From the NCBI GenBank assembly GCA_965285935.1, contig OZ260664.1:78120001-78184000 (forward strand): a stretch of DNA of 64,000 nucleotides. The letters run 5' to 3'. The stretch's first letter is position 1. Each line of letters begins with the position of its first letter. The translations under genes and the position numbers were made by a program. Positions 10,650 through 63,000 of the stretch are shown in pieces. The DNA is from Ophelia neglecta (taxonomy: Eukaryota). The notes under the pieces are model-generated. The model saw only the letters and a list, made by a program, of their open reading frames with translations, did no database searches and was not told the DNA's origin.

Positions 10650-13600
10650 TCATCTAGAGAGATGCTCTGAGATCTCTGGCAGAGAGAACATTTCGGTGTT
10701 TATGTCATCTAAGTCAATGTCGTCGAAGGCGGGGTTATTGTATCCCTGCTCAGCGTCCCTGACGTCACCAATGACCTTGACATTGGCGAGGGGCGCGCCG
10801 TCATGGCCGACGATGATGTCTGGACTCAGCTGTGATAGCTGGCGTCTAACTGCCTCGGGAACTATTGTAAGTGGCTCCAGTGTTTTCTTGCCCTGGGTAG
10901 TGACTATTCCCTCTTCTTGCTTAGCCTGTTCAAAATGTTCCAAAACCTTGCTCTTTGGCATGATTCCTATACGAAAGAAGCCAATATCGCCACCTGTAGG
11001 CAGTCGTCTACAGTCAACCACTGTGGAAGCGGCATTTTCAGCAGAGGCGCCATCACACAGCACCCCGTCACACTAAAACAGTGAAGATTTTATTAGAATA
11101 TAATTAGAAAGAAATATTTTTTGTTACTGTTATTAATAAATGGATTCATTTGGGCCAATTTTGGAAACTTTTTATTGATTCAATTTATCTGGTTGGCTTC
11201 ATCTTTATAGGCCTAGGCCCAGGTCCATAACAACCGTAATTTATGTGTAAATTACATGATTAAATTAAAAAACAAACTATAATATGGACTACAAAGCTTT
11301 TGTTTTGAACATGTTTAGTGTGTCTAGTTGACTTACATTTTGTTCTTCGAGTCTGGCGAGGACCTGGGAGTGGTGGGTGGTGTCCGCCTCCCCCGAGGGG
11401 TTAGCCGAGGTGACCGCTATGGGGCCCACCTGGTCTATCAGGTGGGTGGTCACCGTGTAGTCGGGCAGGCGTACAGCTATACTGTCTGGCTTTCCTATAT
11501 ACTTCTCCGACTCACCCAGACCTAATTTTTCCAACCATGGCCCTGCCGGACGGAAATAGATGGGGGACATATTACATTAGTTTGTTGGTACATATATGGT
11601 GTAAATGGCAATAATTTTAATGGTGTATTTGGCCAGCATTGAAATCAAAGGGACATGATCTGATATCAAACTATTGTCCAATACTTCGCATGCATATCAC
11701 AGACAGGGTAAACTATTTAATCCTTGTAAAGTTCGTAAAAATTACCTTTTGGCACGACGAGACTGATAGAGGAGGGCCAGACTTTGTTCAGGAACCTCCA
11801 GAGGAGAGGGCCGAATTCCTGTCGGGCGTGTTCCAGCTGGTCCAGACTGGAGATCCACAGCGACATGGGCCTGTCTCCAGCCTGCTTCTTAGTGTTGTAC
11901 GCTCTCTGGAAACACAAAATTCCCTTACTAAAACCGGATTTTAAACAAGTGAAACGGAAACATCTTAAAATAAAATTTCTCTATATAAAGTGAGGCCAAT
12001 GGATTGAGTTAATATTCTATTTTCCTACTGCTATTTTTGCCGATGTGAATTTCAAGGGGACGTCATTTTGATAAGGAGGATGGCAAGTTTTGCTAACAAT
12101 AAGAAGTACACATCGTATGTTATTTACCTCAACGGCTTTAGGAAATTTGCAGGCGGCAACGAGAACGTAGACAGTATCTGTAGGAATCCCTACAATACCT
12201 CCCGAATTCAATATAGCTGAAAAAAGAATCCACAACTTGATTAAAATCGTTATTTCTATTGGTCAGATGAAAATTCGAATTAAATCCCAACGAGACGAGT
12301 CAGGATCATTCAAAAAACGGTTGGGGGTTTTAGGGAATAGAGAACAACTTAGGAACCAATGCGTAAAGTTGTACAGTCGTTTAGCTTTAGCATAAGATAT
12401 ATAAAACCGACGATTATATTTGCATACAAGTAAATACATATGCACAACTACCTACCAGCTATTTCCGAGACTCCTTTTGCTTTCTTGGAAGGCGCCATTA
12501 CGACCTTGCCGCTCTCATTTGCGCCATAGACCACTTTGATGATGGCTTTGCCGAGAGGAACAAGAGCACTGCCCAGCACAGATTTGGTGGCGGAGCCGAA
12601 AAAGGCGTAAAAGCAGACGACACTCAGGATGACTGTTAGGGCAATACTAGCTCCTTGTGGAGTGGAAGCTCCGCTGGAAACGCATATGACCAAAACTGGG
12701 TTGACTAAAAGCGCCACGGAATAGAAAAACCACACCTTTTGGATAACAAGTGACAGCGCGGCGAGCAAAAGACCGCCTAGAAGAAAGGCAGTAGGGCCCG
12801 CAGCAAGCTGGAAAGATCCACTAGAACTGGCCATTATCGGCCTACCCCACAGGAGCCAAAACATGCTATACATGATGAAACTGCAACTCTGCAATGACTT
12901 CCCGCGAGACAAACAGACACAACCGACGATGAACTGAATCACGCCACCTACAGGGAGTGTCCAAAACATACTACTGACCTGACCCTCCGGCGACAACCAG
13001 AGCACAGATACTGCAGCAATGGCATTAGTGAGGAAACCTACCATTTCTATTTCGCTGTATTTGGAAAAACCAAGAATATCAGATTCAAGTGTTGTGCTTT
13101 GAATTTTATCGGCAGCATTGTTATTGTTCTTGCTGCAACATGTCTTCAAACGATTCACGCCACTGACAATTTCCTTTGAAATGCCATCGTATTTACCTAG
13201 AGGCACCTTGGACGTTTTCAAACTAATAAGTAATGCGTAATGTAAGACACCATAAATAGTAATAAGCATTAAAATCCAGCACATGACAAGGAAAAACATA
13301 CTTTGGTAACCTTGAATGGCAAGGGCAATGGTTAATATAGTATAAACACTGCTTTGAATAATATGAAACAGTGATTCTTTTGCTGAAAGGATAGATGCAA
13401 ACACAAAGCAGACGGCCATGACACTGAGACTGGCTACATTGACGGGGTCGCTGACTCCTGAAATCAAACTCAGGCCACTACAGATCCATAATGAACCATT
13501 AAGCATGAAAAACACCGAGTGGAACGGAGCAATGTACCTCAAAATGGCTACCCACCCCACAAGTGTCATGACGCCAGACGCGATAAATGTCAAAGCAAAC

Positions 13601-14695
13601 GCCTCGTAAGATATAAGATCAGAAGTGCTTAGAAAGAGGGCGGGAAACACCGCTAAGAGTTGGCAGCAATATACAAAGAGTAAAAGATGAGCTGCACTTT
13701 TCTGAGACTGGGGTTGCTTTCCTTTAGGTTTATACTCTTTACTGGCAAATTTGACCTTTGTGAATGCACTTCTGACTGCAACAAACAGGGCTACAAGACT
13801 CAACACGGTGTTAACGGCTGCCGTACTCACTTGGTAGCTAGCCGGGGTGTACAGGCTGACTACAGCCAGGCTCCAAGAGGCCGCCCACAAAAACGAGATC
13901 AAGGCCAAGTCAAAAGCTTTTGCCGCCATGCCAAAGATCATGAAAGCAACAGATACAAATACAGAGAAGGCCAGGGTTGGAAGGAGAGCCAGTGAAGAAT
14001 TGGGCACATTGATGTTGGACGATATAGCAATACCACCCACTCCCAACAGGCTGGCACACAGACAAAGATGAAAGCTGACAAACAAACGGTTTCTAGGATC
14101 TTCATTCGTTCTACGTAATCCTGTGAAGAGAAAAACATACAAGTTGATGACAATATAAAAAGATTGTTGAGCATTAACTGTGAGCCTGCAAATGCCTTAG
14201 AACAAAAGCAAATATCCTTTTTTTAACCATGCGGGTAACTAAGACATGCTTTTATTTTACTACTGACACATTATCAAGGTATATGTTTTGGAGTTAAGTG
14301 ATCAAGTACTGGTAATGTGATGGATACATATCTTACGGTCAAGAGGTACAACAATGATATCTAAACTGATCTATATGTCTTAAATGTTTGCTGAAGAGCA
14401 CGTGATAGACTGTAGTTCGTTATTGGTTCTATCGTTTGATAGAGCTATGTATCTATCACCAGTAGGCTATATGTCGATTGCTTTTAATTTCGTATGCAAT
14501 AGTATTGAATGTATTAAATAAATACGTTAAACACTCACCGAAGAGGAGTTGGACGAGAGCGAGCAGTGCGAGAAGGACGCCGGATTCTAGATTGCTCCAC
14601 ACGTCAGCCAAGCTCCACTGCTGTGCTGCTAGAATGGCCGCAGCCCCCGCCCCGAGGGACACCATCGCCGTGTTCTCAACACTAAGCTGGGCCAT
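10650..14695 (-). CDS. Polytopic membrane protein A: three diverged SatP/GPR1-FUN34-YaaH-like repeats, Sua5/YrdC domain and acidic tail; about 899 aa, 6 exons
   Basis: Exons 14695-14539, 14120-12456, 12216-12128, 11905-11746, 11542-11337 and 11072-10650 have GT-AG introns in phase (2700 nt). YrdC motifs: GIPTDTVY, VWPSSISLV, IAVRLP, TSANPSG, ASTVVD, FRIG. Repeat 3 has PVGGVIQFIVG...SFIMYSMFW and ends LVPLG; repeat 2 ends KVPLG. Confidence 0.85.
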
Positions 14696-16146
14696 CTTAG
14701 ATCAAATGTCTCTATGGTGTTGTCTCTTTAATCGTAAGTAATATCTTGACTTCTCAAAGATATGCGGAAAACTGAGCTATGGATCTGGGTAAAGTAATTT
14801 ATATCAACTTAGAACCGGGTGCGGGAATTTCATCGTGGTTATCTTGGTTTCCGGAATTGCGCTTGGTGCTCACAGGCACGCGTCCAATGTTAACGCGCTG
14901 TGTTTAAAATACGGAATTCCCGTGTAGCTGACACACGGTCGCCCTGACATAGCGAGCCGGACTAGTTTATTTCACCTATTCAGGTATCTATACGGACGAG
15001 TAAACATAGTGAATGTCGCGTACCTTCAAATCAACAGGACATGCTTAGGAGTCAGGCGCACATTGGCCAGCGACCAATCAGAGACAGCATACACCTTCAT
15101 TGAGAAATCCCTACCTTTGACAAGTGCGTCAACGCACGACTAAATAAACTGGCCCTGAACAGCAAGGCTATAATTTATTTACGAGTTCATTACATCTGTT
15201 GGCATGCGTGTTTGTATATTTTGGTTGCTTCCTGCTGTTTAGCATTGGAGTGATTGGGAAATTGATGAATAAGACTCCCGCTATAGACCGCCGTGACTGT
15301 AGTAATGTTCAGGGTAATCCCGAGTCTCCCGTCATCCGTGGGCTGGTGACTTGCTCAGACACACAGCACAATAAATAAAAGTCGGTGGGAACAAATCATC
15401 TCATATCTTTGGCAGAAGTCATTGAGACAGGACGAGAGACAGAAACAAGTCAAATAATTATAAGCAGGCTTACTGAAGGAGCTTATATCTCCCTAGTTCG
15501 ATTGTTTAAGCTGCGTGTTTAACTCATTTTACGACCTATTAGAAAATACTGAGGGTCATATCACATAAGGACAGAACATAATTAGGTAAGATTAGCGTAT
15601 GTATTTTTGGTTTTATTTTCAGATTTATGTTGCTAATTTATACTTTTATATAGTCATCGAAATTCAGAATTTGTTCACGATGCTCCTTTGTGTTATTATG
15701 GTTTTCTTCAATCATTTTTTTGTCGAAATTTAAGAGGAGTTTAATCACAGACGCGTGTATTCTAACCACTTTATCGTTTAATGCTTGCTTTCAAATGTAA
15801 AGAACATATTTCCTACATGTTATGTCCATGTAACGAAGAAAGTTTTAAGCACAGCCAATTGTGACTTTTTTACTTGAACCAGCCCTTCGAATTTTATCAG
15901 TAGCCATTCTTATAATGAATTGGAATAAACGAATAATGCTGTGTGTTTTTAGCAAGATGCATTATCGCTTCTTTCTTTTATTTTGTATAGCAACTTATCC
16001 GTGTAGAAGTATGTGTTACTTATATAAAGGCACACCAGGCGTACAATTTAAAGCTACATCTTTGTGCCTATACTTATCAATTTAGTTTATCTTTACCCGT
16101 CTTCTGATTGATTGTTTCAGATTAACTGTCATCGCTATAATTGAAA
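14696..16146. promoter_or_regulatory. Shared bidirectional promoter region of the two channel-YrdC paralogues, including the 5'UTR intron of gene B
   Basis: Head-to-head ATGs 1.45 kb apart. Minus-strand TATAAAT at 14797-14803; kappaB-like 10-mers at 14823, 14912, 15102 and 15312; CCAAT boxes near 15060-15080; UTR splice donor AG|GTAAG near 15585 and acceptor TTTCAG at 16120. Confidence 0.55.
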
Positions 16147-19100
16147 ATGTCCGGTGTAGATTCTGACGGTAATCGGGCGTTTGCCGCCATCTTGTATGCC
16201 GAGCCTGGCTCCCTCGGCTTACTGGCCAATGTCCTCTCAGCCTTCGTGGTGGCCATGCAGAACTTCCTCCCAGGAACTGACATGGAGCCTGCAGCATACC
16301 TCATGGCTGGTAGGTTCATTGTATAGTCGTCATGTGCCCTATCATTTTACTTACAATATACGTCGTATAGATGGGTTGCCGAATTTATCACTTTTCGTGA
16401 GTTTGCATTTGCCGCTTGCAGTAGAACGCTTACGTCACTGCATTGGACGTCATAACGGCAATCCAGCCAATTGGCGCCGCGCGGAGTGACATCCGAACGG
16501 AATCTCCATAACAACAGTATCCAATGCAGTGACGTACGCGTTATACTGCAAGCGGCAAATGCAAACTCATGAAAAGCGATAAATTCGGCGACCCATCTAT
16601 ACGACGTATATTGTAAGTAACGTACACTTGCCGCCTTAACAGACACCGCTTGTCAATGTCTTAACCATTCGGGTATTTTTGTAAATGTACTCCTCTTCCA
16701 AAATAATATTGACTTATATATAATTAACATTTATATTCGAAACTTTTCCGAATTTGTACACGCGCTTTAAAGCTTTGTATTTTGTAATACAGATACTTTA
16801 CAACGTATAAATATAAATAACAATATTATCAAATACTAAGCTTTGAATCTGAACTGTATATATATAGTTATACCTACAAACAATTTGTGTACGTCTGTAT
16901 TGGAGTGTAGACTTGTTTCCGCTTCCAGGGAAATGGTTAGTTTGTCTCCGCTCTGTCTAAAACTGAAATAATTAAACTATTTTGATCTATTTCAGGTTTC
17001 CATTTAATACTGATCGGAGGAGTCGTTCAGCTGATTGCCGGCTTCCTGTCCTTTCGTAGAAACGATCATCTCAGTGGCACCGCTTTCCTCAGCTTTGCCG
17101 CCCTATGGACAGCTCAGGGCATCTTGAAGGTGCTGACGCCCCAGTTTGCCGCCAATCTCTGGTTTCGCCCGTCCGTTCTGACGGGAATGGTGGGGTTCTG
17201 TGTTGTTGCTGTGGTTCTATTCGGAGCGGGACTGACCGTAAACTACCTCATGCCACCTGTTTTGGTCGCCATGTTTATTAGCTTGGTATTCGAGTCTGTT
17301 GGGTTGTATTATCCTTGGGCTTTGTATGTTGCTGGTGCTTTCGAGATGTTAATCGTCATTGCTGGCATTTACGGCGCATGCGCGTCCATGCTGCGCGGTA
17401 TCTCCCAAAGATATGTATGGCCGGGATTTGGCAACGCCCTGGTGAACGTTCTGCTAATTAAAACTAAGACTGCCCCTAGATCAAAGATGGAGGTGAAAAA
17501 GAACACGAAATATGCTGAACCCATGGCTTTGGGATACTTATGTAATCTGATTCCCTCCGCCATTTTGGCTTTTTACAGTTTGGGCTTTGCTTCTGCTTAC
17601 CAGCTGAGTTTTGTCTGGGTACTGGCTGTCCTGCCCTGTCAGATGTTTGCCAGTTTCTACGCCTACCTCCGTGACGACATGTATCACGCTGCGACCTTCA
17701 TGTCCTACCTGGCCGTCTGGCTCGGGAAACTTGGAACGGAATTCATTTTCGCCCCAAACCCTATTTTCACCCCTGCTGTGGAATGGACGCCATCTTTGTT
17801 TGGAGTCTGGGCCATGTTCTTTGTAATGGTTGTCATCACCATTGTCTCCCTTTCGAGAGACGTTGTGTCTTTTGTCGTAAACCTTTCGTTTCTAGTCCTG
17901 CTGGTCCTCGGGTACGAGTCCATTCCTTCCCCTGTGTACGGTTATACGTTTGGTGTGGCTAACGTCATCGTTTTCTGTGTGTCGTCTTACGCAGCTGTCA
18001 GTTCTCTCATCAACTCCATCGCCGAGAAGCCTGTTATCCCAGTGGGCTGGGAAATTGTCTCCCTAGATTCATTAGTCACTGGGCTCCTCAAGCTACGGTG
18101 CATGACTACCGAACAGTAAGTACATTGTCCTGCACCTGTATTTGTGAATCATCAGATCTTTGTTCATCTACTCAGCAACTCAATCCATTGAACTATGATA
18201 AAAAATTATCGTTTCTTTTTATTCCAGGCTAAACAAACATGTGAAAACCAAATCAGAGATACCACAGGTTCTTTCGCTGACCTCTCTTGCGGTTTGCTCG
18301 CTATATGGCGCCACCTGCGATGTCACTTCCGGCTATGCCGCTTTGTCTTGGATACTGGGCAGTGGCGTCATCCTACAATTGTACGCAGCTCGTTGCGCCT
18401 ATGGAAGCGGAAATATGACTCGGACCTACATTTCGTCGGTGTTCGCATTATTCTGGGCAGCATGGGCTTACAAAATCATAACGGGTAAGCGAGAAAGACA
18501 TTACTTTCCGCATTGAACGGTTATCAACTCATGATCTCTTAATCATCATGATTGAAATTGGTACATGTTTAATCGTCCTGCTTTTTTTTGCCTTCCAGGC
18601 GCTGCCACCCCTTTAATGACGTCAGTTATTCTTGTTGTCCTCGGTGCCTTTGTCGTATTTGCCTCCGCGGCGTTCTCTGTCGTCTGGCTTTTGACCTCCC
18701 TCCTCATGGAGTTAAATATCGTCTGTCTTTTGATTATGTCTATTGGCGTGTACCCACAATACCTCGCGCTAGTCTCCATGATGGGTACAAGTAAGTTTAC
18801 CTTACTGTTTCGTATTTCAGCAATAAAATTGAAAGGCTTCTGTTGTACATTTTTCTTGTTGACCACACCTTTTGCCATCTAACCCCATATTAAAATGTTC
18901 CAATCCATATTGCCTCAATTTTAGGGAATTTCTAACACTGTGTTTCCGCTTTGCAGGTTTTGTAGCATTTTATGGAGCCGTTGCACTGTTCCTTAACTCT
19001 ACATGTGACCTTGACATTCTCCCAATCGGATCCCCCATTTTCGCTGTAAGTAGACAATCCCTATAGGCCTACCTTTATACGTCGTCTGACCTGGCTATTT

Positions 19101-20587
19101 TTGTATACGAGCAAAAGGTTCAGCTTTTACCACCCCCAGTCGTAATCTGACTCCAGTAGACTTAATATAAGTAGAATTTTAAGTGAAACACTGCTGCAGG
19201 AAAGGCGGATTATAGTTCGTAAGTAGAATTTTCAACTTTAAACCAATTTTTTATATATATATCTACAGATCAAGAGTAAGATGTTGGCCAGAAAGCAAGA
19301 GGCCGAGACGGCTAGCCCTCCATGCCCCTTGTACTCGTCTAATCTGACCAGCGGTCTGAGGGGCATGGCCGACCTCCTCGACCAGGGAGCAGTCACCGGC
19401 ATACCAACCGACACCGTGTACGCGCTGGCCGCCAGCTGTAAACACCCGGACAGCATCGAGCGTCTGTACAAGATCAAAGAACGTCCGGCCGAGAAACCCA
19501 TCTGTCTCTGTCTCAGCTCCCTAGAGCAGCTCAAGGATACTAACCCCGATTTCAGCCCGCTGCTCTGGCGCTTCATGAGGAACTGTTACCCAGGCGGTAT
19601 CAGCTGTGTGGTACCTAAAGGGGAGTGGCTGAAGAGACTGGGTGTAGGAGAGGCGGCTAGCTATGTAGGCACCCCGGCCAGCGTCTGTATCCGGGTACCA
19701 GACAGCACTGTTGTAAGCCACCTAGTGGCTATGACCGGCCCTATCGCCATCACGTCCGCCAACCCCAGTGGCGAGCCAGATAGCACACACCACGATATGG
19801 TCATTGACCGGCTAGGTAAGCTTTTTATTTCTTTAAAATTTGCACTAAATTGAGAGGCTACTCGGGAGCAGTTTTTTCTTATCCCATATCTTATTGCAAA
19901 TTATCTTGAAAAACAAGATGTTTATACAAGAGAAAGTCCATACGAACGTAAAGAGCATGCAGAGAGGATATTTCGTCAAAGAATACTAGAATATTGTATT
20001 ATTTCACCACCATTAGTACATATATCTTCCAAAATCTTTAAGGTTTAAAAACAATACGTACGATATAATTTCCTATGTATTCATTTGATGTTTGCTTAAC
20101 CAGGACACAAACTTGGAGGTGTTTTATGTGACGGGCCCTCTAACCACAGTGTCGCTTCTACTGTGGTCAGCTGTGCCAAGATAGATGAAGGTACGTGCCC
20201 ACACTTACACAGTTACACACGTATATCAAAAAATCATATCACCCTACATGTAAATTAACTACATGTATAACAGAAGCCTGTTTTTGAACACTTATATTGA
20301 TGAATCTAACTTCATTGAATTCAACCGTAAAAAAGCCTTTCAGAGACCATGGTATATTATTTTAAAACGTGTATACCCTATTTTTAACCTTAGAATAACT
20401 TGAATTTTGCAATCAATGCTTAATGCACTGTCTTGTAACAAGTACATAACTATGGCCCTAGTTGATTGTAAAATTGACTTTTTCAGGGGTGCTGACTTAC
20501 TTCCGCATCGGCTGTGTGCCAAAGGAAGTTGTCGAGGCTGTGTTCGAGAAAACAAAAAGAGAAATGGCAGCCGACGCCGCCGCCTAA
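16147..20587 (+). CDS. Polytopic membrane protein B: three SatP/GPR1-FUN34-YaaH-like repeats and Sua5/YrdC (threonylcarbamoyl-AMP synthase-like) domain; about 851 aa, 8 exons
   Basis: Exons 16147-16309, 16996-18115, 18228-18484, 18599-18790 (alternative donor 18784), 18957-19045, 19269-19815, 20104-20190 and 20487-20587 are in phase (2556 nt). SatP-like motifs: AEPGSLGL, IGGVVQLIAGFLSFRRNDHLSGTAFLSFAALW, AEPMALGY, INSIAEKPVIPVG, FYGAVALFLNSTCDLDILPIG. YrdC motifs: PTDTVYAL, KERPAEKPI, YPGGIS, IRVP, TSANPSG, ASTVV, FRIG. Confidence 0.88.
16347..16620. mobile_element. Foldback MITE with about 100-bp inverted repeats in the first coding intron of gene B
   Basis: TTACTTACAATATACGTCGTATAGATGGG...CACTGCATTGG is mirrored by CCAATGCAGTG...CCCATCTATACGACGTATATTGTAAGTAA. 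Confidence 0.85.
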
Positions 20588-25918: not shown

Positions 25919-26087
25919 TGGTGTCAGATGCGGAATCAAGACAAGGCTAGTGACAACTTTATTTCGTGGAACAGCCACCCAGGGCTACAATACGGTGAAA
26001 TTCTACGACTAGTACAGTGACGTCATCGTCAGCTCTGACAGCTTGGCTCTACGCATAAATTAACCTACTATTTTGACAACTACAACA

Positions 26088-29000
26088 ATGGCGGAACTTA
26101 CCGGCATTCCCGTGCCTTCTATGGACTGGCAGTCAACCAATTTACCGGAGGTTTTTCGGAGGTTTAAACAGACATGTCAATACATCTTCGACGGACCATT
26201 AGCTGACAAAAACGAGGAAATAAAGGTACAGTACCTTATGTTATGGATAGGCGAAGAAGGCCGTGACATCCGCGAAACATGGAATTTAAATGCTGATGAC
26301 AAGAAAAAACTTAATATCCATTGGGAGAAAATAGAAGCATATGTCAAGCCCAAATCTAACTTTCGTGTAGCACGATTTAGACTTAGAGCTCTAAGACAAG
26401 AGGAAGGGGAGTCAGTAGACGCTTTTATGACGAAGGCACGACTTCTAGCTTCAGAATGTAACTTTACAGACACCGACGAACAGCTCCTAGAAACTCTCAT
26501 TGCTGGCATACACAATGAAGATGTTCAAAGGAAACTCATATCTAAGGATGACACATTGACACTTCACCAAGCATTGACGCTCGTGAGGACATATGAGGCT
26601 ACACAGAACCAAATGAATGACATTCAAGGGACTAAACATGTTCAAGCACTGAACAGAAATTACAGAGGCCGTCAGAAAAATAAGTACTATGTCAAACCCC
26701 CAGTACAAAAGGGCAAATGTTGGAATTGTGGAGGTGAACACCCCCGTGACTCTAAATGTCCAGCAGAGCATGACAGATGTGACTTCTGCACCAAGGTCGG
26801 ACATTGGGCTAAGGTATGTTTAATGAAACAAAATTCACAGAATACCGATAATGACAACAACCCATATAACCATAAGACACGATCCAGGACAGGTGATAAA
26901 CAAAACTACAAGTCACGACAAGGCAAAAAAGTACACACCCTTAACGATGATCAGAGTGACAATGATGATATTTCACAGGCTTCCAATGACATGGGAGAAT
27001 TCACGTTTGACACAATTGAAACTATCTACAAACAAGGCCACAATGATCAGGCATTTGCAAACATAAATATTGTGACAGATAGGGGTGTTTACAGTGTCAA
27101 GTGTAAAATCGATACCGGAGCACAATCAAACGTTATGCCACTCAGAGTATACAAACTCTTATTCCCGCAAAACATTGACAGAGGAAGACCAAACAATTTA
27201 CAATCAAGTAGCGAGAAATTGAGAGCTTATGGTGGAAACGAAATAAAACAATATGGTAAATGTCAATTACCATGTTCACACAAAAACAAGAAATTACTGC
27301 TTGATTTCTACGTAACAGAAGCTACAGGAAACACAATGCTAGGACTTCGGTCAAGCATAGACATAGGACTTGTTACACTGAACTGCGAAAGCAAAGACAG
27401 CTGTGAGCAGTGCCATGACAAAAGCCAAATACATTCAGTAGGACTTGTCTCTGATAAACCGAAACAGGAATTGATTGACAAATATCCAGACTGTTTCAAA
27501 GGGGTTGGATTGTTTCCAGGTAAATATCGAATAGAACTCAGGCCAGATGCAGAATCTGTCATTCACCCACCGAGGCGGGTACCAGAAGCTCTAAAAGACA
27601 AGCTGAAAGTCGAACTTGATAGAATGGAAAACATGGACATAATTGAAAAGGTCGACTGTCCAACCGACTGGGTCAACAATCTTGTTTACATCACAAAACC
27701 TAACGGGGACCTGCGAATTTGTCTCGATCCAAGAGAACTGAACAAATGGGTCAAACGAGAACACCATTACATGCCAACATTGGACGATATACTACCACAA
27801 TTAACAGATGCGAAAGTGTTTAGCATCATCGATGCTCGATCTGGTTACTGGAACGTCATGCTTGACAAAGATTCTAAACATCTAACAACATTCAACACCC
27901 CATACGGGAGATACTGCTTTAGGCGGCTGCCATTCGGAATAAAGTCGGCGCAGGACATTTTTCAAAAAAAGGTAGACCAGACTTATCAAGGGCTGACAGG
28001 CGTTTGTGGCATTGCCGACGACATCATCGTCCATGGACCAAACAATGAGGCCCATGATGAAAATTTACTTCGCATGATGGATAGAACCAGAGAAGTCGGA
28101 CTGGGCCTCAACCCAGAAAAGTGTGTTATCAAAACAGACCGAATCAAGTTCTTTGGAAATTACTTGTCTGCAAAAGGACTTGAACCAGACCCAGATAAAA
28201 TAGCTGCTATTACAGATATGGAGGCACCCGAGAACCTGACACAGTTACAGACATTCCTTGGGATGGCCAACTACTTAAGCAGATTCACAAACAACTTATC
28301 TGCTTTATCAGAGCCTTTACGCAAGCTAGGAAAACAGGACTCAGACTATCAATGGCATCATGAACACCAACAGGCATTCGAAAAAATGAAGGCAACCATA
28401 TCTTCATCACCTGTACTGAGATACTATGATGCACAAAAGCCAATCACTGTTCAAGTGGACGCGTCAAAACGCGGACTTGGATCTATACTACTACAGGACA
28501 AACAACCTGTGGCTTTCGCAAGTAAAGCCCTCAGTGAGGCAGAATCCAACTACTCCAATATTGAACGTGAGATGCTTGGAGTCGTCTTCGGCTTGAAAAG
28601 ATTTCACCACTATGTATATGGACGGAAGGTCACAGTTGAAACGGATCACAAACCACTGGAAAGTATTACGAAGAAAAGCATTTCTAGCGCCCCTCCACGC
28701 CTCATGCGCATGCTCCTTCAAATACAGCAGTATGACTATGACGTGAAATATGTTCCAGGCAGAGATATTCCCGTGGCCGACGCACTCTCTAGATCTCCAA
28801 CCCAGGGGGAAGAAATGCCTGATATGGATATAACAGTTCATGAACTTGTGAATGTAACTCCTAACAGATTACAACAAATAAAAGCCCTCACCCGTCGAGA
28901 CGAAACTCTACAAAAACTAATCGACACTGTCATGACAGGATGGCCCAACCTGTACAGGGATTGCCCAGTTGAAATCCAGAAATATTGGAACTACCGCGAT

Positions 29001-30176
29001 GAGATAAGCATCTATGACGGGGTATTGCTGAAGGGAGATCGGGTAATTATACCAAAGACACTACAGGAAGAAGTCCTTAAACAGATACACACGGGCCATC
29101 AGGGAATTGAGAAATGCCGACTAAGGGCAAGAGCCTCAGTGTTTTGGAGTGGAATCAACTCAGACATCGATCTCATGGTGAAAAGCTGCTCTGCTTGCCA
29201 GCACAATAAACCATCACAACAGAGGGAGCCACTCATTCACATGGATGCTCAACAGCCATGGTCAATAGTTGGATCTGACTTATTTCACTGGAACAAGAAT
29301 GACTATTTGATACTGGTCGACTACTTCAGTACATTTACTATTGTACGAAAACTTGAATCCACCAAGGCCCCACCAGTCATCAATAAGCTGAAAGCTATCA
29401 TGTCTGAGTACGGCATACCACTTACACTCGTAAGCGATAATGGGCCACAGTACAGCTGTAAGGAATTCAAGGACTTTGCAGACCAGTACGGATTCCGACA
29501 CATTACTAGCAGTCCTCACTTCCCACAAGCAAATGGTCGCACAGAAAAACATGTTGGAGACACAAAGAAAACACTACAAAAAGCCCTTGAGGACAAGCAG
29601 GACGCTGCTATGGCATTACTATGTGTCAGAACAACACCTCTGGACCACGGACTACCTTCACCAGCAGAACTGCTATTCTCCCGCAAACTACAATCCAACC
29701 TTCCAGTCGTCAATGTGAGGAAGGAAAGGGATGATATAACTCAAAGAATGCAAACCAGGCAAGCTGACTCCGAAAAACATTACAATTCAGCAGCTATAAT
29801 ACTGCCAAAACTGGAGACTGGCCAATCCGTGAGAATCCAGGACCCAGTAACAAAGAAATGGGAACCAGCTCGCGTACAACAAGAATGCTTTCAACAACCG
29901 AGATCATATATTGTTGAAGGCAAATCAGGAGCCACGTACAGGAGGAACCGGAAACAGATCAGGACCACCGGTGAAACTTTCGACCCCCAGACATGCGGTC
30001 GAAATCCGAACATCAGCGAACCAGACCATGACAATGAAACACCGGATACACCAATCAGTGACGCCCACAATTCATCAAATTCGACCGCCAGTATGATAAA
30101 GACACCCTCCAAAAATAGTGGTCATACTACTAGATCAGGACGCGCCGTCATCGCTCCTCAAAGATTAGATTTGTGA
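26088..30176 (+). CDS. Gag-Pol polyprotein (Gag with two zinc knuckles, protease, RT, RNase H, integrase)
   Basis: Single ORF, first ATG at 26088. Motifs CWNC..H..C and CDFC..GHW..C, DTGA protease, LPFG and IADD RT, DAS...TDHKPL RNase H, H..H..C..C and SDNGPQY integrase, in Gypsy domain order. Confidence 0.95.
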   Translation: MAELTGIPVPSMDWQSTNLPEVFRRFKQTCQYIFDGPLADKNEEIKVQYLMLWIGEEGRDIRETWNLNADDKKKLNIHWEKIEAYVKPKSNFRVARFRLRALRQEEGESVDAFMTKARLLASECNFTDTDEQLLETLIAGIHNEDVQRKLISKDDTLTLHQALTLVRTYEATQNQMNDIQGTKHVQALNRNYRGRQKNKYYVKPPVQKGKCWNCGGEHPRDSKCPAEHDRCDFCTKVGHWAKVCLMKQNSQNTDNDNNPYNHKTRSRTGDKQNYKSRQGKKVHTLNDDQSDNDDISQASNDMGEFTFDTIETIYKQGHNDQAFANINIVTDRGVYSVKCKIDTGAQSNVMPLRVYKLLFPQNIDRGRPNNLQSSSEKLRAYGGNEIKQYGKCQLPCSHKNKKLLLDFYVTEATGNTMLGLRSSIDIGLVTLNCESKDSCEQCHDKSQIHSVGLVSDKPKQELIDKYPDCFKGVGLFPGKYRIELRPDAESVIHPPRRVPEALKDKLKVELDRMENMDIIEKVDCPTDWVNNLVYITKPNGDLRICLDPRELNKWVKREHHYMPTLDDILPQLTDAKVFSIIDARSGYWNVMLDKDSKHLTTFNTPYGRYCFRRLPFGIKSAQDIFQKKVDQTYQGLTGVCGIADDIIVHGPNNEAHDENLLRMMDRTREVGLGLNPEKCVIKTDRIKFFGNYLSAKGLEPDPDKIAAITDMEAPENLTQLQTFLGMANYLSRFTNNLSALSEPLRKLGKQDSDYQWHHEHQQAFEKMKATISSSPVLRYYDAQKPITVQVDASKRGLGSILLQDKQPVAFASKALSEAESNYSNIEREMLGVVFGLKRFHHYVYGRKVTVETDHKPLESITKKSISSAPPRLMRMLLQIQQYDYDVKYVPGRDIPVADALSRSPTQGEEMPDMDITVHELVNVTPNRLQQIKALTRRDETLQKLIDTVMTGWPNLYRDCPVEIQKYWNYRDEISIYDGVLLKGDRVIIPKTLQEEVLKQIHTGHQGIEKCRLRARASVFWSGINSDIDLMVKSCSACQHNKPSQQREPLIHMDAQQPWSIVGSDLFHWNKNDYLILVDYFSTFTIVRKLESTKAPPVINKLKAIMSEYGIPLTLVSDNGPQYSCKEFKDFADQYGFRHITSSPHFPQANGRTEKHVGDTKKTLQKALEDKQDAAMALLCVRTTPLDHGLPSPAELLFSRKLQSNLPVVNVRKERDDITQRMQTRQADSEKHYNSAAIILPKLETGQSVRIQDPVTKKWEPARVQQECFQQPRSYIVEGKSGATYRRNRKQIRTTGETFDPQTCGRNPNISEPDHDNETPDTPISDAHNSSNSTASMIKTPSKNSGHTTRSGRAVIAPQRLDL

Positions 30177-42493: not shown

Positions 42494-43183
42494 ATGTCTT
42501 TGATAAATTTCAAAAGCGAGAACGCCAAGGGAGACTGTCCTGCTGTGTTGGTCAAGGGAGGGGAGATAGGAGTGATCGTCCTTCAGGAGTGGTGGGGGCT
42601 GAACGATCAGATCAAGGAGGAAGGGGCCGACATCTCTCGCCGGGGAAACTTCACTGTCCTCATCCCTGATCTGTACCGCGGAAAGGTGGCCACCGACCGC
42701 GAGACGGCCGGACATTACATGAATGACCTTGACTGGCCCGGCGCTGTGAAGGATGTCAAGGGGGCAGCGCAGTACCTTCTGGCCAATGGCTGCAAGAACG
42801 TAGGTGTAACCGGCTTTTGTATGGGAGGCGCCCTCTCAATGGCGGCCGCCGCAATGGTACCGGAAGTAAAAGCATCTGTTCCATTTTACGGCATTCCAAG
42901 CGCCGAGCTTTGCGACGTGTGTACCATAAAATGCCCTATGCAGTGTCATTTTGGGGAGAAGGATGAATTAGAGGGGTTTTCTTCACCGAAGGACTATAAT
43001 GCTCTTAAGGAGAAGCTATCCAAGGCCAAAGTCCCCTTCGAGTTGCATACCTACCCCGCTGGTCACGCCTTTACCAACCGGACAGGACCCCTGGAAAACT
43101 ATAATGAGGAGTGTACCGAAAAGGCTTTAGACCGCATGGCCGCTTTCTTCACGGAAAAGTTGGGCGAAAGCAGTAAAATGTAA
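42494..43183 (+). CDS. Dienelactone hydrolase family protein (usf/CMBL-like alpha/beta hydrolase), 229 aa
   Basis: Motifs QEWWG, PDLYRG, GFCMGG nucleophile elbow, FGEKD and AGHAF give a complete Cys-Asp-His triad. Single coding exon with a UTR acceptor TTTTCAG just upstream. Confidence 0.92.
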   Translation: MSLINFKSENAKGDCPAVLVKGGEIGVIVLQEWWGLNDQIKEEGADISRRGNFTVLIPDLYRGKVATDRETAGHYMNDLDWPGAVKDVKGAAQYLLANGCKNVGVTGFCMGGALSMAAAAMVPEVKASVPFYGIPSAELCDVCTIKCPMQCHFGEKDELEGFSSPKDYNALKEKLSKAKVPFELHTYPAGHAFTNRTGPLENYNEECTEKALDRMAAFFTEKLGESSKM

Positions 43184-57034: not shown

Positions 57035-60000
57035 CTACTGAGCGGCATGCAGTTCCCACAGGCAGTTGGCCAGGGCGTTGGAGGACTCCACATTGCTCAG
57101 GGCCACATAGGACAGATGCTCCTCGTGACGTTTTATTTTGCTAAAAACAAAGACAGAATGATTGTTTGAAAAAAAAATTTTGAAACTATATTGAGCTCCA
57201 ACATCAAATAATATAACATAAGTAATTCAAAGTAATAAATGTTAATATAGATTAATAATAGTAGAAATTTCATTTAGCAGGCCATCATTTTCTTATAGAT
57301 TAATTTGCTTAAAATCCACTTGATTTCATTTTTTTGGGAGTTGCGTTACAATACTACTGGATGAACATTTGATTTGGTTACTAATGCTGACACGGTCACT
57401 AATTGTCTTTATTAATTACCTTCTGCCCTGTGCTGAGTAGCGAGCCAAGTTGCGGAGTATCAGCGCCGAGGTTAAACGGATGTGTTTGGTCACAGGCCCC
57501 TCCTTCATCTCCTAGTAACAGACAAAGGAACACAGATTAATATAAGTTTATATGTAAATAGCCTGACGACTGGTATGTGGACAATGTTTTGTATCACAAT
57601 CAAATAACCTGATGATAGTTTGCACATGTTATTTTAATGTTCAGTTTCATTCTCCACCAATGAACTGAACTGGGTCAGGTCAATGTTTTGTATCACATTT
57701 AAACTCAATCTCCACCCCTAATTTGAACTGGGTCAGTTGAATCTGAACATGTGGTTACCACTATAATACAGTCCTACTTTGACCAAATACAATTACAGTA
57801 AAACCTGGCCTAGAGGACACCTGACAATTAGGGACACACTGACTATTAAGGACATTGTTTTTAGTACAGTTGTAATACTTTACATGTAAAGTAACCTGTG
57901 GCTGTCCCTTATTGTCAGGTTTCACTGTAGTCGAGTTTCTCTGGCCGGTATTATGTTATTAATCAATTATGGGTGGATGTGGATTATTTGACTGTCAATC
58001 CATCATTCTCGACTAATCTCAGGAACTCGTTTGCTCAAAGCAGGGAGGCATGTAACTTTTTGTTCTTTTATAAAAATAAGGTTTCTTGAGCAATTCCGGG
58101 CCAAAAGCCCTGAGGGAGTGCAATTTAATTTATTTCCCTAAAAAAACTTTTGGCCAAGTTATATAGGAGAGCATTTCTTTAATAAGAACATAAATAAAAA
58201 TGTTTCTGTGCCCTGGATTAGGTAAGGCAGGGACTAAGAAAATCTTTAGTCATTTTGTATGGCATTACAGTTTCATGTGTACATGTCTATTGAATTTGTA
58301 TACTGGTAATCTTTTCTATAAACAGTTGAAAAAAACCCGAAAAATAGTGACATAAATACTGAAGACGGACCGCAAATTCTGGGTAGGGAGGCCTGGCTGA
58401 GAATCTTCTTATGGCTTGGTAGGCAGCATCATTAGGGTAGACAGGGGGTGCCGAGGGCTGGGGAGGCGGCGCCGGGGCCACCTGGGCGGGGGGCGCCGTG
58501 GGCTGCTGAAGTCTCTTGATGGCCGACGCTCGCAGGGCCGTCTCCGTCAGGTGGCGATCCTACACAGGGAATTCAGTCAATTAGAAACATGTTGTACATT
58601 TTGTAAATGAAATTCGTAGCTAACTACAGGCAATCAGTCATCCACTTATTGTCCAAATGTGTAAACTAATAGAAGGTAATCTTCTACTTTCCACAATATT
58701 TAGCCTGGCGAGCCTAACCTATCATAATATACTTGGCTTGTTGCATGGTGTATATTCACTTTAAAAGGAGTATATATATAGTGTTAAATGAGAAAGAATT
58801 AACTTAAAGATGATCCATGATACTGTCCTAGTTTTAACACAAGTCTTGATCTCTACTTATTACAGCAGGTTCTGTCCAAAGGCAGAATGTTTTCTGGGCA
58901 TCTTGTACATACCACACCTGTAGATGGGTCAATATAAACAGTGCTTACCTGTAGATGGGTCAAGAAGGACCACTTTGCCCTGCGTAGGCCATCACAGCCC
59001 TCCCATTGGCAGATCACAAACGGAATGGTCTTGTGGAAATGTTCAGCTAAAGCATGGAGGCTAACTGCCGACCACGTCTCAAAACACCTGCAAACATACC
59101 CAGTAAATGTGTTAGTCACGCCAGTATCATAGTGTATTAAAGCAGAAGACGAAAAAGGAACACATGCCCCCACCAATGGGAATGAATAGTATATATGTCT
59201 GTTAGACCGTCCACTCCAAACAAAGTATTAATAAAATTCCAACCATATCAAAGTAAAATGTTTATCTTCAAATCCATTTGCAATGCACAATTACAAAGCT
59301 GCACACAAACTTTGATGATTTTGTTTAATACCTTCAGAAGTATTGGTCATTTAATAACCTCATAAGTAATGGTAGTAGTGTCCCAAATTCTACTTGGAAA
59401 AAATTTGCCAGGCCTAAACACGACATGTATGCAATATGAGGCCCATGGCTCAAAGGGTTGAGAAGTTATAGCTAGTTAAATGTGAGGCCACCATGGGCCA
59501 GTCCCACTACATATCCCACAAAATCTTCTCTAAATAAGATGAGGGAAATATGGCATCAACATTTTTAATATACGAGTTTTATAGCCCACAGACACAATTA
59601 TAAATATTATTACCAGCCTGTGAGTTTAAGTATGTTGAGTATATGTTAAATCTGTACCCACCTGTTACAACCTTTCCAATCACACCAGTATTTGAGAGGT
59701 TGCTGAGGTGGCAGCTGGGCGGCAGCCACCGCCTGGGGCTGCGAGGGAGTGGCAGGAGGGTTGGACTCATTGCCAACTTTACGCTGTCCCTTTTTGATTG
59801 GCACCTTTTTCTTCTTGGCTGACTTTGTAGGGGTAGGTGTAGCCGGAGCCTGGCGTTTTGTGTCGGCAGGAGACATTGGACCTGCCAGGTGGGAGCCTGC
59901 CTGGGAGGCCACCGGGTTCCCTGATTTGGGGGGTATCCACGAGGCAGTAGTGGGCAGCTGGAGCTGTTGCTGGAGGATGTTGTTAGGCCCTGTGGTCTGT

Positions 60001-63000
60001 GAGACCACTACCATCTGAGGCCGAGGGGCGATGTGAGTGAGGGCCTGGCTGGCCAGGGCCTGGCTGGCCAGGGTTTGGCTAGCCAGGGCCTGGCTGGTCA
60101 GGGCCTGGCTGGCCAGCGCTGGGGAAGGCTGGGGTAGTTTCTGGGCAGCCACCACCTGCTGTGTGAAGGTCTGGGGGTTGAGAGGAGCCGTGGCCCAGCC
60201 GGCCTGGGACTGACCCGGAGTCACAGACATGACCACCAGGCCCTGGCTGACCAGGCCCTGGCTAAGGAGGCCCTGGCTCACCAACCCTTGGCTGACTACC
60301 GCGGGCTGGCCGATGATCTGCACCTTATTTGGGATGGATGTCTGCGGAATGCTGCTCACCATAACCTGTCCAGATGGAGTTATCTGAGTCTGGGAGGTCT
60401 GGGCCACCTGAGACTGTGAGGTCTGGGCCATCTGAGCCTGTGAGGCCTGACCAATCTGAGCCTGCGAGGGCTGGACTATCTGTCCAGGAGGACCCTGTAG
60501 CAGCTGGCCCTGGGTCATCACCTGGGCAGCCTGTATCACCTGGCTTTGGGAGGTGTGTATCACTTGGCCACCACTGTTTATCACTCCTGCTTGAAGCAGC
60601 TGACCCTGAATTCCTTGTTGTTGTACTACCATTGGAACTTGCTGTCCATTCTGTTGTACAAATACTACTCTTGGCTGTGGCTGACCTACCATCTGTTGGG
60701 AGTGACTGACTGCCTGTTGCTGATGTCCCACTGCTTGTTGTAACTGCCCTACTGCCTGTTCTGAATAATTAACTGCCTGCTGTGGCTGTCCTATGGCTGG
60801 CTGTGGTTGTCCGATGGCCGACTGTGGCTGTCCAATGGCCTGCTGTGGCTGCCCCATGGCCTGCTGTGGCTGTCCATTGGCCTGCTGTGGCTGTCCCATG
60901 GCCTGCTGTGGCTGTCCCATGGCCTGCTGTTGCTGTCCCATGGCTGGCTGTGGCTGTCCTATGGCTGGCTGTGGCTGTCCCATGGCTGGCTGTGGCTGTC
61001 CCATGGCCTGCTGTGGCTGTCCACTGGCCTGCTGCGGCTGTCCCATGGCCTGCTGCGGCTGTCCCATGGCCTGCTGCGGCTGTCCCATGGCCTGCTGTGG
61101 CTGCCCCACGACTAGCTGTGGTTGGGGAGCTGCCTGAAGTGGCTGGTCCACTGCCATCTGAAGCTGTCCTAGTGCCAGTTGTGGTTGGTTTGCTGGCTGT
61201 ACCAGCTGGCTGACCACCTCGGGCGTCACCACTGGCTGTGATGCTAGTGGCTTGCTTTGAAGCTGAGAGACAAGGACACTTTGGGTGGCAGTCGGCTGCT
61301 CGGGGGCAGGGAAGGCCTGCTGAGATCTAGGGATGAGAGTGCTAGCAGCTGGTATATCCAGAGTCTGCTTCATGGCCACGGCCAGGATGTCTTGAGTAGG
61401 TGCTGCTGCTGTAGGCTGAGCCGGTAAGGCTGCTGGAGTATGGGTAGCCGGGGGCTGCTCCGTGCCGGTCTGCCAGCCCTGGTGTCTGTTATGTGTACTC
61501 GCGTGTACCTGGGTTCCAGTGACAGTGGCGGGCAGTAAAGGCAGAGGGGTGGCAGTGTGGGGCTGGACGGCAGAGGGGGGCATGGTCACACATTGGCCAG
61601 AGGCTCTGAGGTCACTAGAGGGGCCTGATTCAGGATGCTGGCTCAGGGACGCCCCTTCGGATTGAGCATCTTGCTGTGCATTGCCTGGTCCTATGGAGTT
61701 GGCTTTCAGTGAGCTTGTCACTCCCCTGGCAGTATCAGTATCAGCCTGAGGCAGGCTATAGTCTATGTGTGGGGTGTCCGGCCCACCGTTAGGCCTGCAG
61801 GGCTGGTCTGAGGAGGAGGAGGCCGGCGAGGGGTAGCCGTTCTCCACAGTGAGAGCCACCTGCTGGTTAGCCTTGGAGGTCTCCTGCTTGTCCCCTGGAG
61901 CCTTGCCATTATTGTCTTTCAGCAGAGCCACATGGCAGTCACCATTACCTAAGTGATTTTTCACCACTCCATTCAGACCAAACAGCTGTTGTTTGATGAC
62001 TTTACTGTTTTCACTAAGCAGGGCAGAGATCTGTTTCTTCCCTGCTATTGAGATCTCCTTTTTCATTTCCTGTATATCCAGCACAGTTTGTGGTATGAGG
62101 TCCTTCCCTACTAAGTCTGGCTCGTCCGAGGGGGCAGGCGAGCAGAGCCCATTGACCAGCGGCTCCTGGGCTTTGCCTCCGTTCACCCCTCTAACCGCCG
62201 GGTGGTGATTAGTCTCCATGGGTCCACTCCGACTCACCGCGTCCTCGAGTCCGTTCATGTGGCCAGGAATCTCCGAGACATGTCCTAGTGAATTGACTTG
62301 CTCACCAGGACAGCTCCCTGCTATAGACACGCTACCTGTTTCACTAGTTTTTGTGACACCACAGTTCGTATTTCCAGGACAATGAGAAGCACTGGTACAG
62401 CTAGTTTTATAAGTGGTGCCTGAAGATTCCAAACTGGTTTCCTCTTTCATCAAAGGGTTCATTTCAATTTTCCCAGCCAACATTTCTTTCTGCTGGTCAA
62501 CATGCTTTGCCTCTTGCTGTTTCATTGTACTATGGTCCACAGTCTCAGCACTGGCAGCTGTCACCTTTTCCCTGGTGAATGAGGTTGTAGAACTGGCGAC
62601 TGCAGTGACTGTGCAGGTGACTGGGGCCTGCGAGTTGGACAGTGGCGCCGCAGTGGTCATGAAGGGTATCGACGAGCTGGAAACTTGGCTCAACGCGCTG
62701 GAGACTGCAGCTGGCATGTTTGAGACTCCTGTACTCACAAGTGGGGTTGGTGAGCTTGACGAGGACACACTCGTGCTGGTGATGTTGATCTGCAAACTGG
62801 CGGTAGGAGCTGTCGAGCTGGTGCCTTGTGGGACCAATACCTCAGGGCCAGTGTTTGCAGTATTCACACAGCTAGACGAGCAGAGTGGGTCTGGTTTGAC
62901 TTGTGTACAATTGTCAGTAGCTGCCACTTTTGGTTCGACAGGTGTTGGTGAGGAGCTGGCTTTCCTCTTCTTAGCACGTTTCTCGGGTGGCTGATGCTGG

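Follow-up and report, generated by a model that had tools for sequence, protein, structure and literature searches.

The stretch of DNA analysed here (the window) comprises 64 kb of Ophelia neglecta contig OZ260664.1, and all coordinates refer to it unless another source is named. It is eukaryotic, with a GC content of ~40 % and short GT-AG introns. On its + strand lies a gene, here called gene A, that is predicted to encode three tandem SatP-type membrane units followed by a C-terminal YrdC domain. A paralogue of the same architecture (gene B) is arranged head to head with gene A, and an orthologue of IRG1 (ACOD1), the gene of cis-aconitate decarboxylase, lies on the far side of gene B. The initial annotation of the locus described the architecture of gene A correctly and overlooked both the paralogue and the IRG1 neighbour. 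Taken as a whole, our data make it very likely that gene A belongs, as an intact gene, to the animal Ato/AceTr-YrdC family; its product may be a channel-enzyme in an IRG1-linked context.

Gene A extends from 16147 to 20587 (+) and consists of eight exons with a summed length of 2556 nt, i.e. 851 codons and a TAA stop codon:

16147..16309, + strand: exon 1, with the start codon, the N-terminus and the first transmembrane helix (TM1) of unit 1 (E-P-G-S-L-G-L); donor CTG/GTAGGT
16996..18115, + strand: exon 2, with TM2-6 of unit 1, a cytosolic linker and the complete unit 2 (about 17502-18050); 372 residues
18228..18484, + strand: exon 3, with the linker between the units and TM1-3 of unit 3; 56 % identity to the closest relative (L007, see below)
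18599..18790, + strand: exon 4, with TM4-5 of unit 3
18957..19045, + strand: exon 5, with TM6 of unit 3 and the SatP-like C-terminal ...LNS...LPIG; it ends in phase 0 at the consensus donor GCT/GTAAGT
19269..19815, + strand: exon 6, with a linker that is conserved and has a P-C-P motif, followed by the greater part of the YrdC domain (PTDTVY, K-E-R, S-A-N)
20104..20190, + strand: exon 7, with the YrdC strand carrying ...ASTVV... (the Ser181 site of Pyrococcus abyssi Sua5, Pa-Sua5)
20487..20587, + strand: exon 8, with the YrdC C-terminus, R-I-G (the Arg195 site of Pa-Sua5) and the TAA stop

The reading frame opens with the ATG at 16147 and is kept at every junction. All seven introns are of the GT-AG type with good consensus, the TAA is located at 20585-20587, and an ATTAAA follows 37 nt past the stop. 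The exons were searched one by one, and statements on the whole protein rest on a natural orthologue from Argopecten (XP_069127556; P0002), with which the exons of the window are collinear over residues 13-846 (tblastn), exon 1 corresponding to residues 13-48 and exons 3 and 4 to residues 453-570. All eight exons are also present in the closest relative, a contig from the ENA that derives from a second annelid-like species (L007); the DNA identity is 68-84 % (amino acid identity of exon 1: 72 %) and the introns are unalignable. The ratio of nonsynonymous to synonymous substitution rates (dN/dS) relative to L007 was about 0.03-0.14 across the exons and about 0.06 in exon 6, at saturated dS. Within the sample, gene A carried 21 synonymous and 7 nonsynonymous variants; in the core of the YrdC domain seven out of seven were synonymous, and the three nonsynonymous variants of exon 6 fall in the linker. 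Both halves of gene A are under selection.

Intron 1 of gene A contains a 274-bp element (16347-16620) that resembles a miniature inverted-repeat transposable element, with terminal inverted arms of 101 nt that are 95 % complementary. Its read depth exceeded that of the flanks more than 1000 times, indicating that the element occurs in very many copies. In one contig, 16349 and 16642 are connected by 26 letters of different sequence; this points to an allele of intron 1 that is free of the insertion.

The membrane part had been proposed to contain three repeats of the SatP (GPR1-FUN34-YaaH) family, each starting with an NPAPLGL-like motif and ending in N......P.G. All three starting motifs were recovered, AEPGSLGL from exon 1, AEPMALGY from exon 2 and SEIPQVLSL from exon 3, and exon 5 has the C-terminal ...LNS...LPIG. 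The proposed unit ending applies in general; it is loose in unit 1, which reads ...QRYVWPGFG. In profile searches, exon 2 matched Pfam Gpr1_Fun34_YaaH (PF01184) over residues 4-132 at E=1.4e-4 with 21.9 bits (gathering score: 25), the exon being without TM1, which is encoded in exon 1. Two relatives exceeded the cut-off (P0010, 28.3 bits; P0007, 33.8 bits), and unit 1 matched both PF01184 and NCBIfam AceTr_1. A search of all PDB sequences with exon 2 alone returned SatP as its sole matches (5ys3, E=1e-3; also 5zug), which cover residues 169-350 and thereby the full 188-residue protomer. In an AlphaFold (AF2) model of exon 2 (pLDDT 83.8, pTM 0.85), residues 171-351, corresponding to unit 2, aligned with SatP at Z=15.9 with a root-mean-square deviation (rmsd) of 3.0 Å over 177 of 182 residues; the match that followed was unrelated and had a Z of 8.

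Unit 3 is the most diverged of the three units and has the weakest sequence likeness. Exon 3 with its upstream non-coding flank gave one sub-threshold match to PF01184 (E=0.043), and exons 3-5 in their correct frame returned nothing for PF01184 in the Pfam search, so the evidence for unit 3 comes from profile-profile comparison and from the fold. The AlphaFold model of P0002 (pLDDT 81, pTM 0.74) contains 18 helices, and its unit 3 aligned with SatP at Z=20.2 and an rmsd of 2.2 Å over 169 residues (VIA-align). A family alignment of 52 sequences (A1) was cut into three units and a YrdC block for comparison by hhalign. The family profile matched SatP at E=4e-12, and the units matched one another with probabilities of 98.3 %, 96.7 % and 98.2 % (E=2e-14, 4e-10 and 5e-14), compared with <3 % for the units against the YrdC block. 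Taken together, the mutual homology of the units and the six-helix folds of units 2 and 3 bear out the proposed repeats, and three SatP-fold units are almost certainly present in gene A. A PF01184 profile search of the O. neglecta genome itself gave no match; this is no evidence of absence, because the family is too diverged for matching exon by exon.

The pore residues of SatP were mapped onto the three units via the alignment of exon 2 with SatP and the unit-to-unit hhalign alignments. At the constriction site Phe17, unit 1 has Asn (44 of 46 animal sequences), unit 2 Asp or Asn and unit 3 Asn or Ser. The Tyr72 site is occupied by F/Y in unit 1, H/Y in unit 2 and Y/L in unit 3, and the Leu131 site by Ala in unit 1, mixed residues in unit 2 and V/L in unit 3; in unit 2 of gene A the three sites read N, Y and L. 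The equivalent of Trp76 is invariant in all three units, and that of Gln50 is mostly kept. The NPAPLGL signature takes the form E-P-x-x-L-G-[LY] in units 1 and 2, with an invariant Glu at the Asn site, and is not recognisable in unit 3. Because both signature and constriction are altered, the permeant and the gating may differ from those of SatP. The pores thus look conserved, with a narrow point that would be polar instead of hydrophobic and that may affect selectivity.

The YrdC domain gave the clearer profile matches. Exon 6 matched Pfam Sua5_yciO_yrdC (PF01300) over the cut-off (E=2.5e-30) and NCBIfam TIGR00057 at E=5.5e-26 with 91 bits (full-length P0002: 110 bits; equivalog cut-off: 123.2). 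Matches of exon 6 to TsaC2 and Sua5 chains in the PDB were at about E=1e-15, and the family profile matched Sua5 at E=5e-26. In the P0002 model the domain aligned with Pa-Sua5 at Z=27.1 with an rmsd of 1.9 Å over 205 residues (Foldseek: E=3e-10). In Pa-Sua5, threonine is bound by Thr35, His67, Arg121, Ser181 and Arg195, and a KxR/SxN tetrad is present (PMC6004061). Gene A retains T35, K56, R58, R121, S143, N145 and S147 in this numbering, with the motifs of S181 and R195 in exons 7 and 8, and the PTDTVY, K-E-R, S-A-N and R-I-G motifs listed in the initial annotation as intact were all found in exons 6-8. At the His67 site gene A has Cys, as do the canonical YRDC of Periplaneta and that of its own genome, and it is identical to the canonical insect YRDC at all nine active-site positions compared. 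These residues suggest that the domain probably binds ATP and a threonine-like substrate, and they tip the balance somewhat towards catalytic activity.

The canonical gene of the same genome is located elsewhere:

C7:29312122-29313513 (29.31 Mb), − strand: canonical YRDC-like gene with PTDTIY, K-C-R and S-A-N motifs; one match with an internal TAA

No membrane exons were found in the surrounding 10 kb. Because this gene exists elsewhere in the genome, gene A is unlikely to be the housekeeping enzyme for threonylcarbamoyladenosine (t6A).

Whether the two halves form one protein was assessed from relatives of gene A. The PF01300 domain is C-terminal in nine of nine relatives of 814-1138 aa, and more than 50 collinear orthologues of 800-900 aa carry the fusion, with named members from bivalves, gastropods, cephalopods, amphioxus, fishes and amphibians. 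Atlas clusters add hundreds of chordate members of the fused architecture. In addition, the fused open reading frame (ORF) runs uninterrupted on a 3.7-kb protist transcript from MMETSP and on a 10-kb metagenome contig. For one uninterrupted fused gene from the ENA (L009), the neighbouring genes gave no Pfam match. In gene A, the intron between the two halves (intron 5) is 223 nt long and has a perfect donor; the linker ahead of the YrdC domain contains residues that are conserved in the family. Comparison and the folds thus support the initial claim that three SatP-type units and, C-terminal to them, a YrdC domain with its catalytic motifs make up a single polypeptide. From these sequence comparisons, we consider it highly probable that gene A encodes one polypeptide, presumably from one mRNA.

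Gene B and its interval to gene A are organised as follows:

10650..14695, − strand: gene B, six exons, 899 codons, of the same architecture as gene A with a very diverged membrane part
14695-14539, 14120-12456, 12216-12128, 11905-11746, 11542-11337 and 11072-10650, − strand: exons of gene B, from reading of ORFs and junctions
14696..16146, no strand: interval of 1.45 kb between the divergent start codons of B and A, presumably a shared promoter region

A PF01300 match lies at 11340-11495 in gene B, and a word-prefiltered protein homologue search with its large exon gave no match. No ATG precedes the PTDTVY motif, and the first helix of the YrdC domain spans an exon junction. The active site of gene B is changed: KxR reads K-K-Q, with loss of the arginine, and Trp occupies the His67 site. 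At the C-terminus an acidic tail of roughly 100 residues follows. The L007 orthologue of gene B has the same K-K-Q and Trp; its amino acid identity to gene B is 46 % in the membrane exon and 77-93 % in the YrdC exons.

The head-to-head layout of A and B recurs in L007, in Lymnaea (L010) and in Saccostrea (L015). Motif inspection of five loci and of a Candidula protein (P0051) showed that the B type (...RPMS.WIS..., with Q, L or A in place of the arginine of KxR) occurs beside or near the A type in Lymnaea, Saccostrea, amphioxus and Takifugu, and also in Candidula. In the protist sequences, the Trp occurs together with an intact KxR. The presence of the B type in molluscs, amphioxus and Takifugu indicates that the A/B duplication is older than the protostome-deuterostome split. 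Judged by its residues, gene B is probably a non-catalytic or altered partner of gene A.

Beyond gene B, the window contains the IRG1 orthologue:

4344-3838 and 3576-2677, − strand: ORF blocks of the IRG1/ACOD1 (cis-aconitate decarboxylase) orthologue, with the N and C domains of MmgE_PrpD (Pfam)

The first block is without an ATG, and the 5' exon with the start codon, possibly encoding a targeting peptide, was not located. Comparison with the human and mouse cis-aconitate decarboxylase structures gave E=1e-86 and 8e-42, compared with 1e-18 for IDS epimerase. The 762-Mb genome gave no other MmgE_PrpD match, and the distances of this orthologue to genes B and A are 6.3 and 11.8 kb, respectively. 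L007 has the genes in the same IRG1-B-A order. Head-to-head arrangements of an IRG1-like and an Ato-YrdC gene were also seen in three chordates: the catfish Tachysurus, which carries the pair as two tandem copies, Takifugu and Branchiostoma floridae. A survey of IRG1 (bioRxiv 10.1101/2022.06.17.496652), which covered molluscs, amphioxus and vertebrates and listed no annelid IRG1, found genes for 'YrdC', VOC, 2OG-Fe(II) oxygenase and GAT in synteny with vertebrate IRG1L as well as with the pIRG1 of molluscs and amphioxus. Its authors noted the loss of IRG1L from therian mammals and 'no obvious functionally related gene clustering'. Expression in zebrafish points in the same direction as the gene order: si:ch211-153b23.3,.4 and.5 were co-induced with irg1l at r=0.86-0.90 (18 contrasts, one table), compared with r=−0.40 to 0.50 for four unrelated genes in the same contrasts. 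Moreover, si:ch211-153b23.3 and.5 have been described as hub genes alongside irg1l and noxo1a. In three papers si:ch211-153b23.3 figures solely as an unannotated, differentially expressed gene, and the zebrafish members of the family are recorded as unnamed genes induced by infection or stress.

Some further features of these neighbourhoods were recorded. On Tachysurus vachellii CM065154.1 (17.61 and 17.68 Mb) the pair of IRG1-like and Ato-YrdC genes is tandemly multiplied; the two loci are identical in layout, and at least four identical proteins of 877 aa have locus tags five to six genes apart. A VOC gene follows the A/B pair in Lymnaea (L010, 23971-28789) and in Saccostrea (L015, 21689-23636); profile searches of the window with PF00903 and PF05721 found no VOC or PhyH gene. 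Downstream of gene A, the window contains:

26073-30176, + strand: pol of the Ty3/gypsy type with 1367 codons (reverse transcriptase, RNase H, integrase zinc-binding domain, integrase core), between gene A and the following gene
42494-43183, + strand: single-exon dienelactone hydrolase gene (PF01738, E=3.5e-45)
59646-63500, − strand: open frame of 1284 codons with 50-60 % GC

A dienelactone hydrolase gene also follows gene A in L007 (19020-19697), so that the neighbourhood of IRG1, B, A and this gene is common to both species. The frame of 1284 codons had a weak GLTT-repeat match as its sole match and for this reason probably represents a repeat array or a repeat protein of low complexity.

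From its sequence, the reading of gene A as a channel-enzyme is plausible. The initial annotation had offered two mechanisms: a substrate might be adenylated or carbamoylated at the pore, or ATP, threonine or bicarbonate might gate the channel. The possible operation of the protein can be outlined as follows. The first ~610 residues would form three diverged SatP/AceTr anion-channel protomers with 18 helices and one pore per unit, and the last ~240 residues would form an adenylate-forming domain of the TsaC/Sua5/YRDC type. Since the termini of SatP are inside and the number of helices is even, the YrdC domain is expected on the cytosolic side. Two chains could assemble into a six-unit ring as in the SatP hexamer, as has been hypothesised in print. 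The YrdC domain of gene A might generate an adenylate like threonylcarbamoyl-AMP (TC-AMP) or might sense ATP, threonine and bicarbonate, and gene B might serve as its non-catalytic partner. The channel would carry a small carboxylate (itaconate, succinate or acetate-like) or bicarbonate, and transport would be coupled to, or controlled by, the ATP-dependent domain.

A role of the protein in the IRG1/itaconate branch of innate-immune metabolism is suggested because the A/B pair adjoins the only IRG1 of the genome and because this neighbourhood is conserved in chordates. We regard the chances for and against such a functional tie of Ato-YrdC to IRG1 as evenly balanced; itaconate itself is a rather unlikely permeant. 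A more far-reaching version, which is speculative and which we consider doubtful, is that A and B form a six-pore heterodimer that moves itaconate, a related C4/C2 carboxylate or bicarbonate with a flux tied to ATP-dependent adenylation or sensing, and that this module of IRG1/IRG1L predates the protostome-deuterostome split and was lost together with IRG1L in therians.

Other explanations of the locus start from its two halves. The fusion could be an accident of frame between a membrane protein that ends at a stop codon at 19064-19066 and a separate YRDC-like protein that starts at an ATG at 19281; the stop lies only 18 nt beyond the donor of exon 5, and the resulting product of 240 residues would have the normal size of YRDC. 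Databases also hold 'threonylcarbamoyl-AMP synthase-like' models of 180-290 aa from this clade. As candidates for independent soluble paralogues these were rejected, because they begin inside TM17 or TM18 of unit 3 and are therefore truncated. Moreover, the gap between the two genes would be just 215 nt long and is free of poly(A) signals, the ATG is missing in L007, where the junction of exons 5 and 6 is still in phase 0 and open without any ATG ahead of PTDTVY, and gene B likewise lacks an ATG at this point. Together with the fused orthologues, the uninterrupted fused frames of other eukaryotes and the linker conserved across the family, this makes two separate genes extremely improbable. 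If one protein is made, its membrane part could simply be an anchor for a housekeeping t6A enzyme that supplies TC-AMP at a membrane, e.g. that of mitochondria. The canonical active site would fit such an enzyme, and automatic names such as 'Threonylcarbamoyl-AMP synthase' and 'YrdC domain-containing protein, mitochondrial' point to it. However, a canonical YRDC gene is present elsewhere in the genome, bacterial TsaC and animal YRDC (36 % identity, E=8e-14) are equally distant from the fused clade, and the family is reported to be absent from mammals. An anchor would also not need 18 helices, conserved residues of the pore region (the W76 and Q50 equivalents) and low dN/dS, and the acidic N-terminus is unlike a mitochondrial presequence. 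We consider this explanation very unlikely.

Closer to the channel-enzyme is a protein in which the YrdC domain is a non-catalytic ligand sensor that binds ATP, threonine or bicarbonate and gates the three pores, with no adenylate being released. Binding residues would be kept for sensing just as for catalysis, and TC-AMP is an unstable compound for which no membrane-bound acceptor is known. The B type argues in the same direction: its YrdC domain is strongly constrained, as seen in the identity to L007, even though the KxR arginine is lost in every lineage seen, which indicates that the fold is useful without the canonical tetrad. Against a sensor stands the A type, which in annelids, molluscs and chordates retains the complete catalytic tetrad and not just the binding residues. 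A pure sensor is possible on this evidence, though unlikely. A different use of catalysis was weighed as well: N-carboxy-threonine, the TsaC intermediate, has a succinate-like skeleton, and a YrdC domain retuned to adenylate itaconate directly was considered for this reason. With the active site unchanged from canonical YRDC at the nine sites, this candidate was weakened and is the less likely one.

The preferred reading of gene A as a single channel-enzyme in an IRG1-linked context has to be held against several observations. The window's own exons stay under the gathering cut-off of PF01184, the TIGR00057 scores fall short of the equivalog cut-off, and none of the units keeps NPAPLGL or the F17-Y72-L131 constriction unaltered. 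The identity of the active site to that of canonical YRDC argues against a new enzyme substrate such as itaconate. With regard to one polypeptide, the in-frame ATG within exon 6 and the stop codon after the donor of exon 5 mean that a separate product consisting of YrdC only may exist in O. neglecta. A search for sequencing runs of this organism found no RNA run, and the three runs that contain the locus are genomic DNA, in which contigs cross the introns and contain no splice joints, so that they are uninformative on splicing. As for the link to IRG1, conserved synteny and co-expression show co-regulation and not a shared pathway, and sult5a1 tracks irg1l equally well (r=0.91). In addition, the mollusc loci with the A/B pair (Lymnaea, Saccostrea) have no IRG1 within 10 kb; a gene of the glyoxalase family (VOC) adjoins the pair there.

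A channel that is covalently joined to the domain of a universal tRNA-modification enzyme is an odd design. Our findings show that it is older and more widespread than published, since it is found in an annelid-like genome, in molluscs, amphioxus and protists besides vertebrates, and that it comes in two ancient types, one with the complete YRDC active site (A) and one with a consistent loss of the ATP-site arginine (B). In genomes of annelids, amphioxus and teleosts, Ato-YrdC genes are found beside the itaconate synthase gene IRG1, and in fish their expression rises together with that of irg1l. If the link to IRG1 is true, the protein would be a missing component of itaconate biology outside mammals. 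If the heterodimer indeed moved itaconate, non-mammalian animals would possess an itaconate channel-enzyme that is unlike the known itaconate transporters.

Gene A shares with bacterial SatP/YaaH (E. coli, 5ZUG; Citrobacter koseri, 5YS3) the six-helix fold, the equivalents of Q50, Y72 and W76 and the C-terminal ...N...LP.G. SatP is a protomer of 188 residues that forms homohexamers, whereas in gene A three units are covalently linked and an enzyme domain is attached. NPAPLGL of SatP is changed to E-P-x-x-L-G in units 1 and 2 and lost in unit 3, Phe17 is replaced by Asn, Asp or Ser, and Leu131 by Ala in unit 1. With the TsaC/Sua5/YRDC enzymes (Pa-Sua5, 6F87; Thermotoga maritima TsaC2, 9DSQ; E. 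coli TsaC, 1HRU) gene A shares the fold, the KxR/SxN tetrad and the threonine-binding residues. In contrast to these enzymes, its domain is membrane-tethered, is without the C-terminal domain of Sua5 and belongs to a separate ancient clade beside canonical YRDC, and paralogue B lacks the KxR arginine.

The YrdC-like domains of HypF, TobZ and GdmN were structural matches with Z=10-19, weaker than Sua5 and TsaC. In these proteins the fused YrdC module passes adenylated carbamate to a neighbouring domain, and its partner is a Kae1-like transferase. They provide a precedent for a fused YrdC domain; in gene A a Kae1-like domain is absent and the partner is a channel instead.

The architecture itself has been described. 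Ghasemi et al. (bioRxiv 10.1101/2025.05.26.656167, section 3.6) found three tandem Gpr1/Fun34/YaaH (Ato) domains with a C-terminal Sua5/YciO/YrdC domain in vertebrates, superimposed AlphaFold models on SatP and hypothesised that a dimer corresponds to the SatP hexamer. They found the family in every vertebrate lineage but mammals, with two clades in vertebrates; they regarded the protostome sequences that fall within this family as few and possibly horizontally transferred, and reported the YrdC domain to be absent from the protostome clade. The novelty that the initial annotation had implied for the architecture is therefore not given, hundreds of database proteins also having it, and its background statement that the SatP family is essentially non-animal is outdated. 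Gene A has the architecture, the order of units and domain and the length class (851 vs about 900 aa) of the vertebrate ATO (zebrafish si:ch211-153b23.3). Compared with fish, amphioxus and mollusc members, its identity over membrane exon 2 is 36-44 %; over the YrdC exon it is 55-63 % (mollusc, amphioxus) and 70 % (catfish). The two vertebrate clades of Ghasemi et al. are probably the counterparts of A and B.

While Ghasemi et al. presented the family as vertebrate, we found the fusion in an annelid-like genome, where it occurs in two anciently diverged forms (A and B), as well as in bivalves, gastropods, cephalopods, amphioxus and data from unicellular eukaryotes. With members across Mollusca, in two annelid-like species (two paralogues) and in amphioxus, vertical inheritance is favoured. 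Their description covers neither the neighbourhood with IRG1 nor the split of A and B at the active site, and neither their preprint nor the IRG1 survey (10.1101/2022.06.17.496652) connects Ato-YrdC with IRG1 synteny; the latter reports the same adjacency of YrdC and did not recognise the gene as a triple AceTr channel. The present analysis thus adds a protostome member of the kind described, the distinction of A and B, the altered constriction and the linkage to IRG1.

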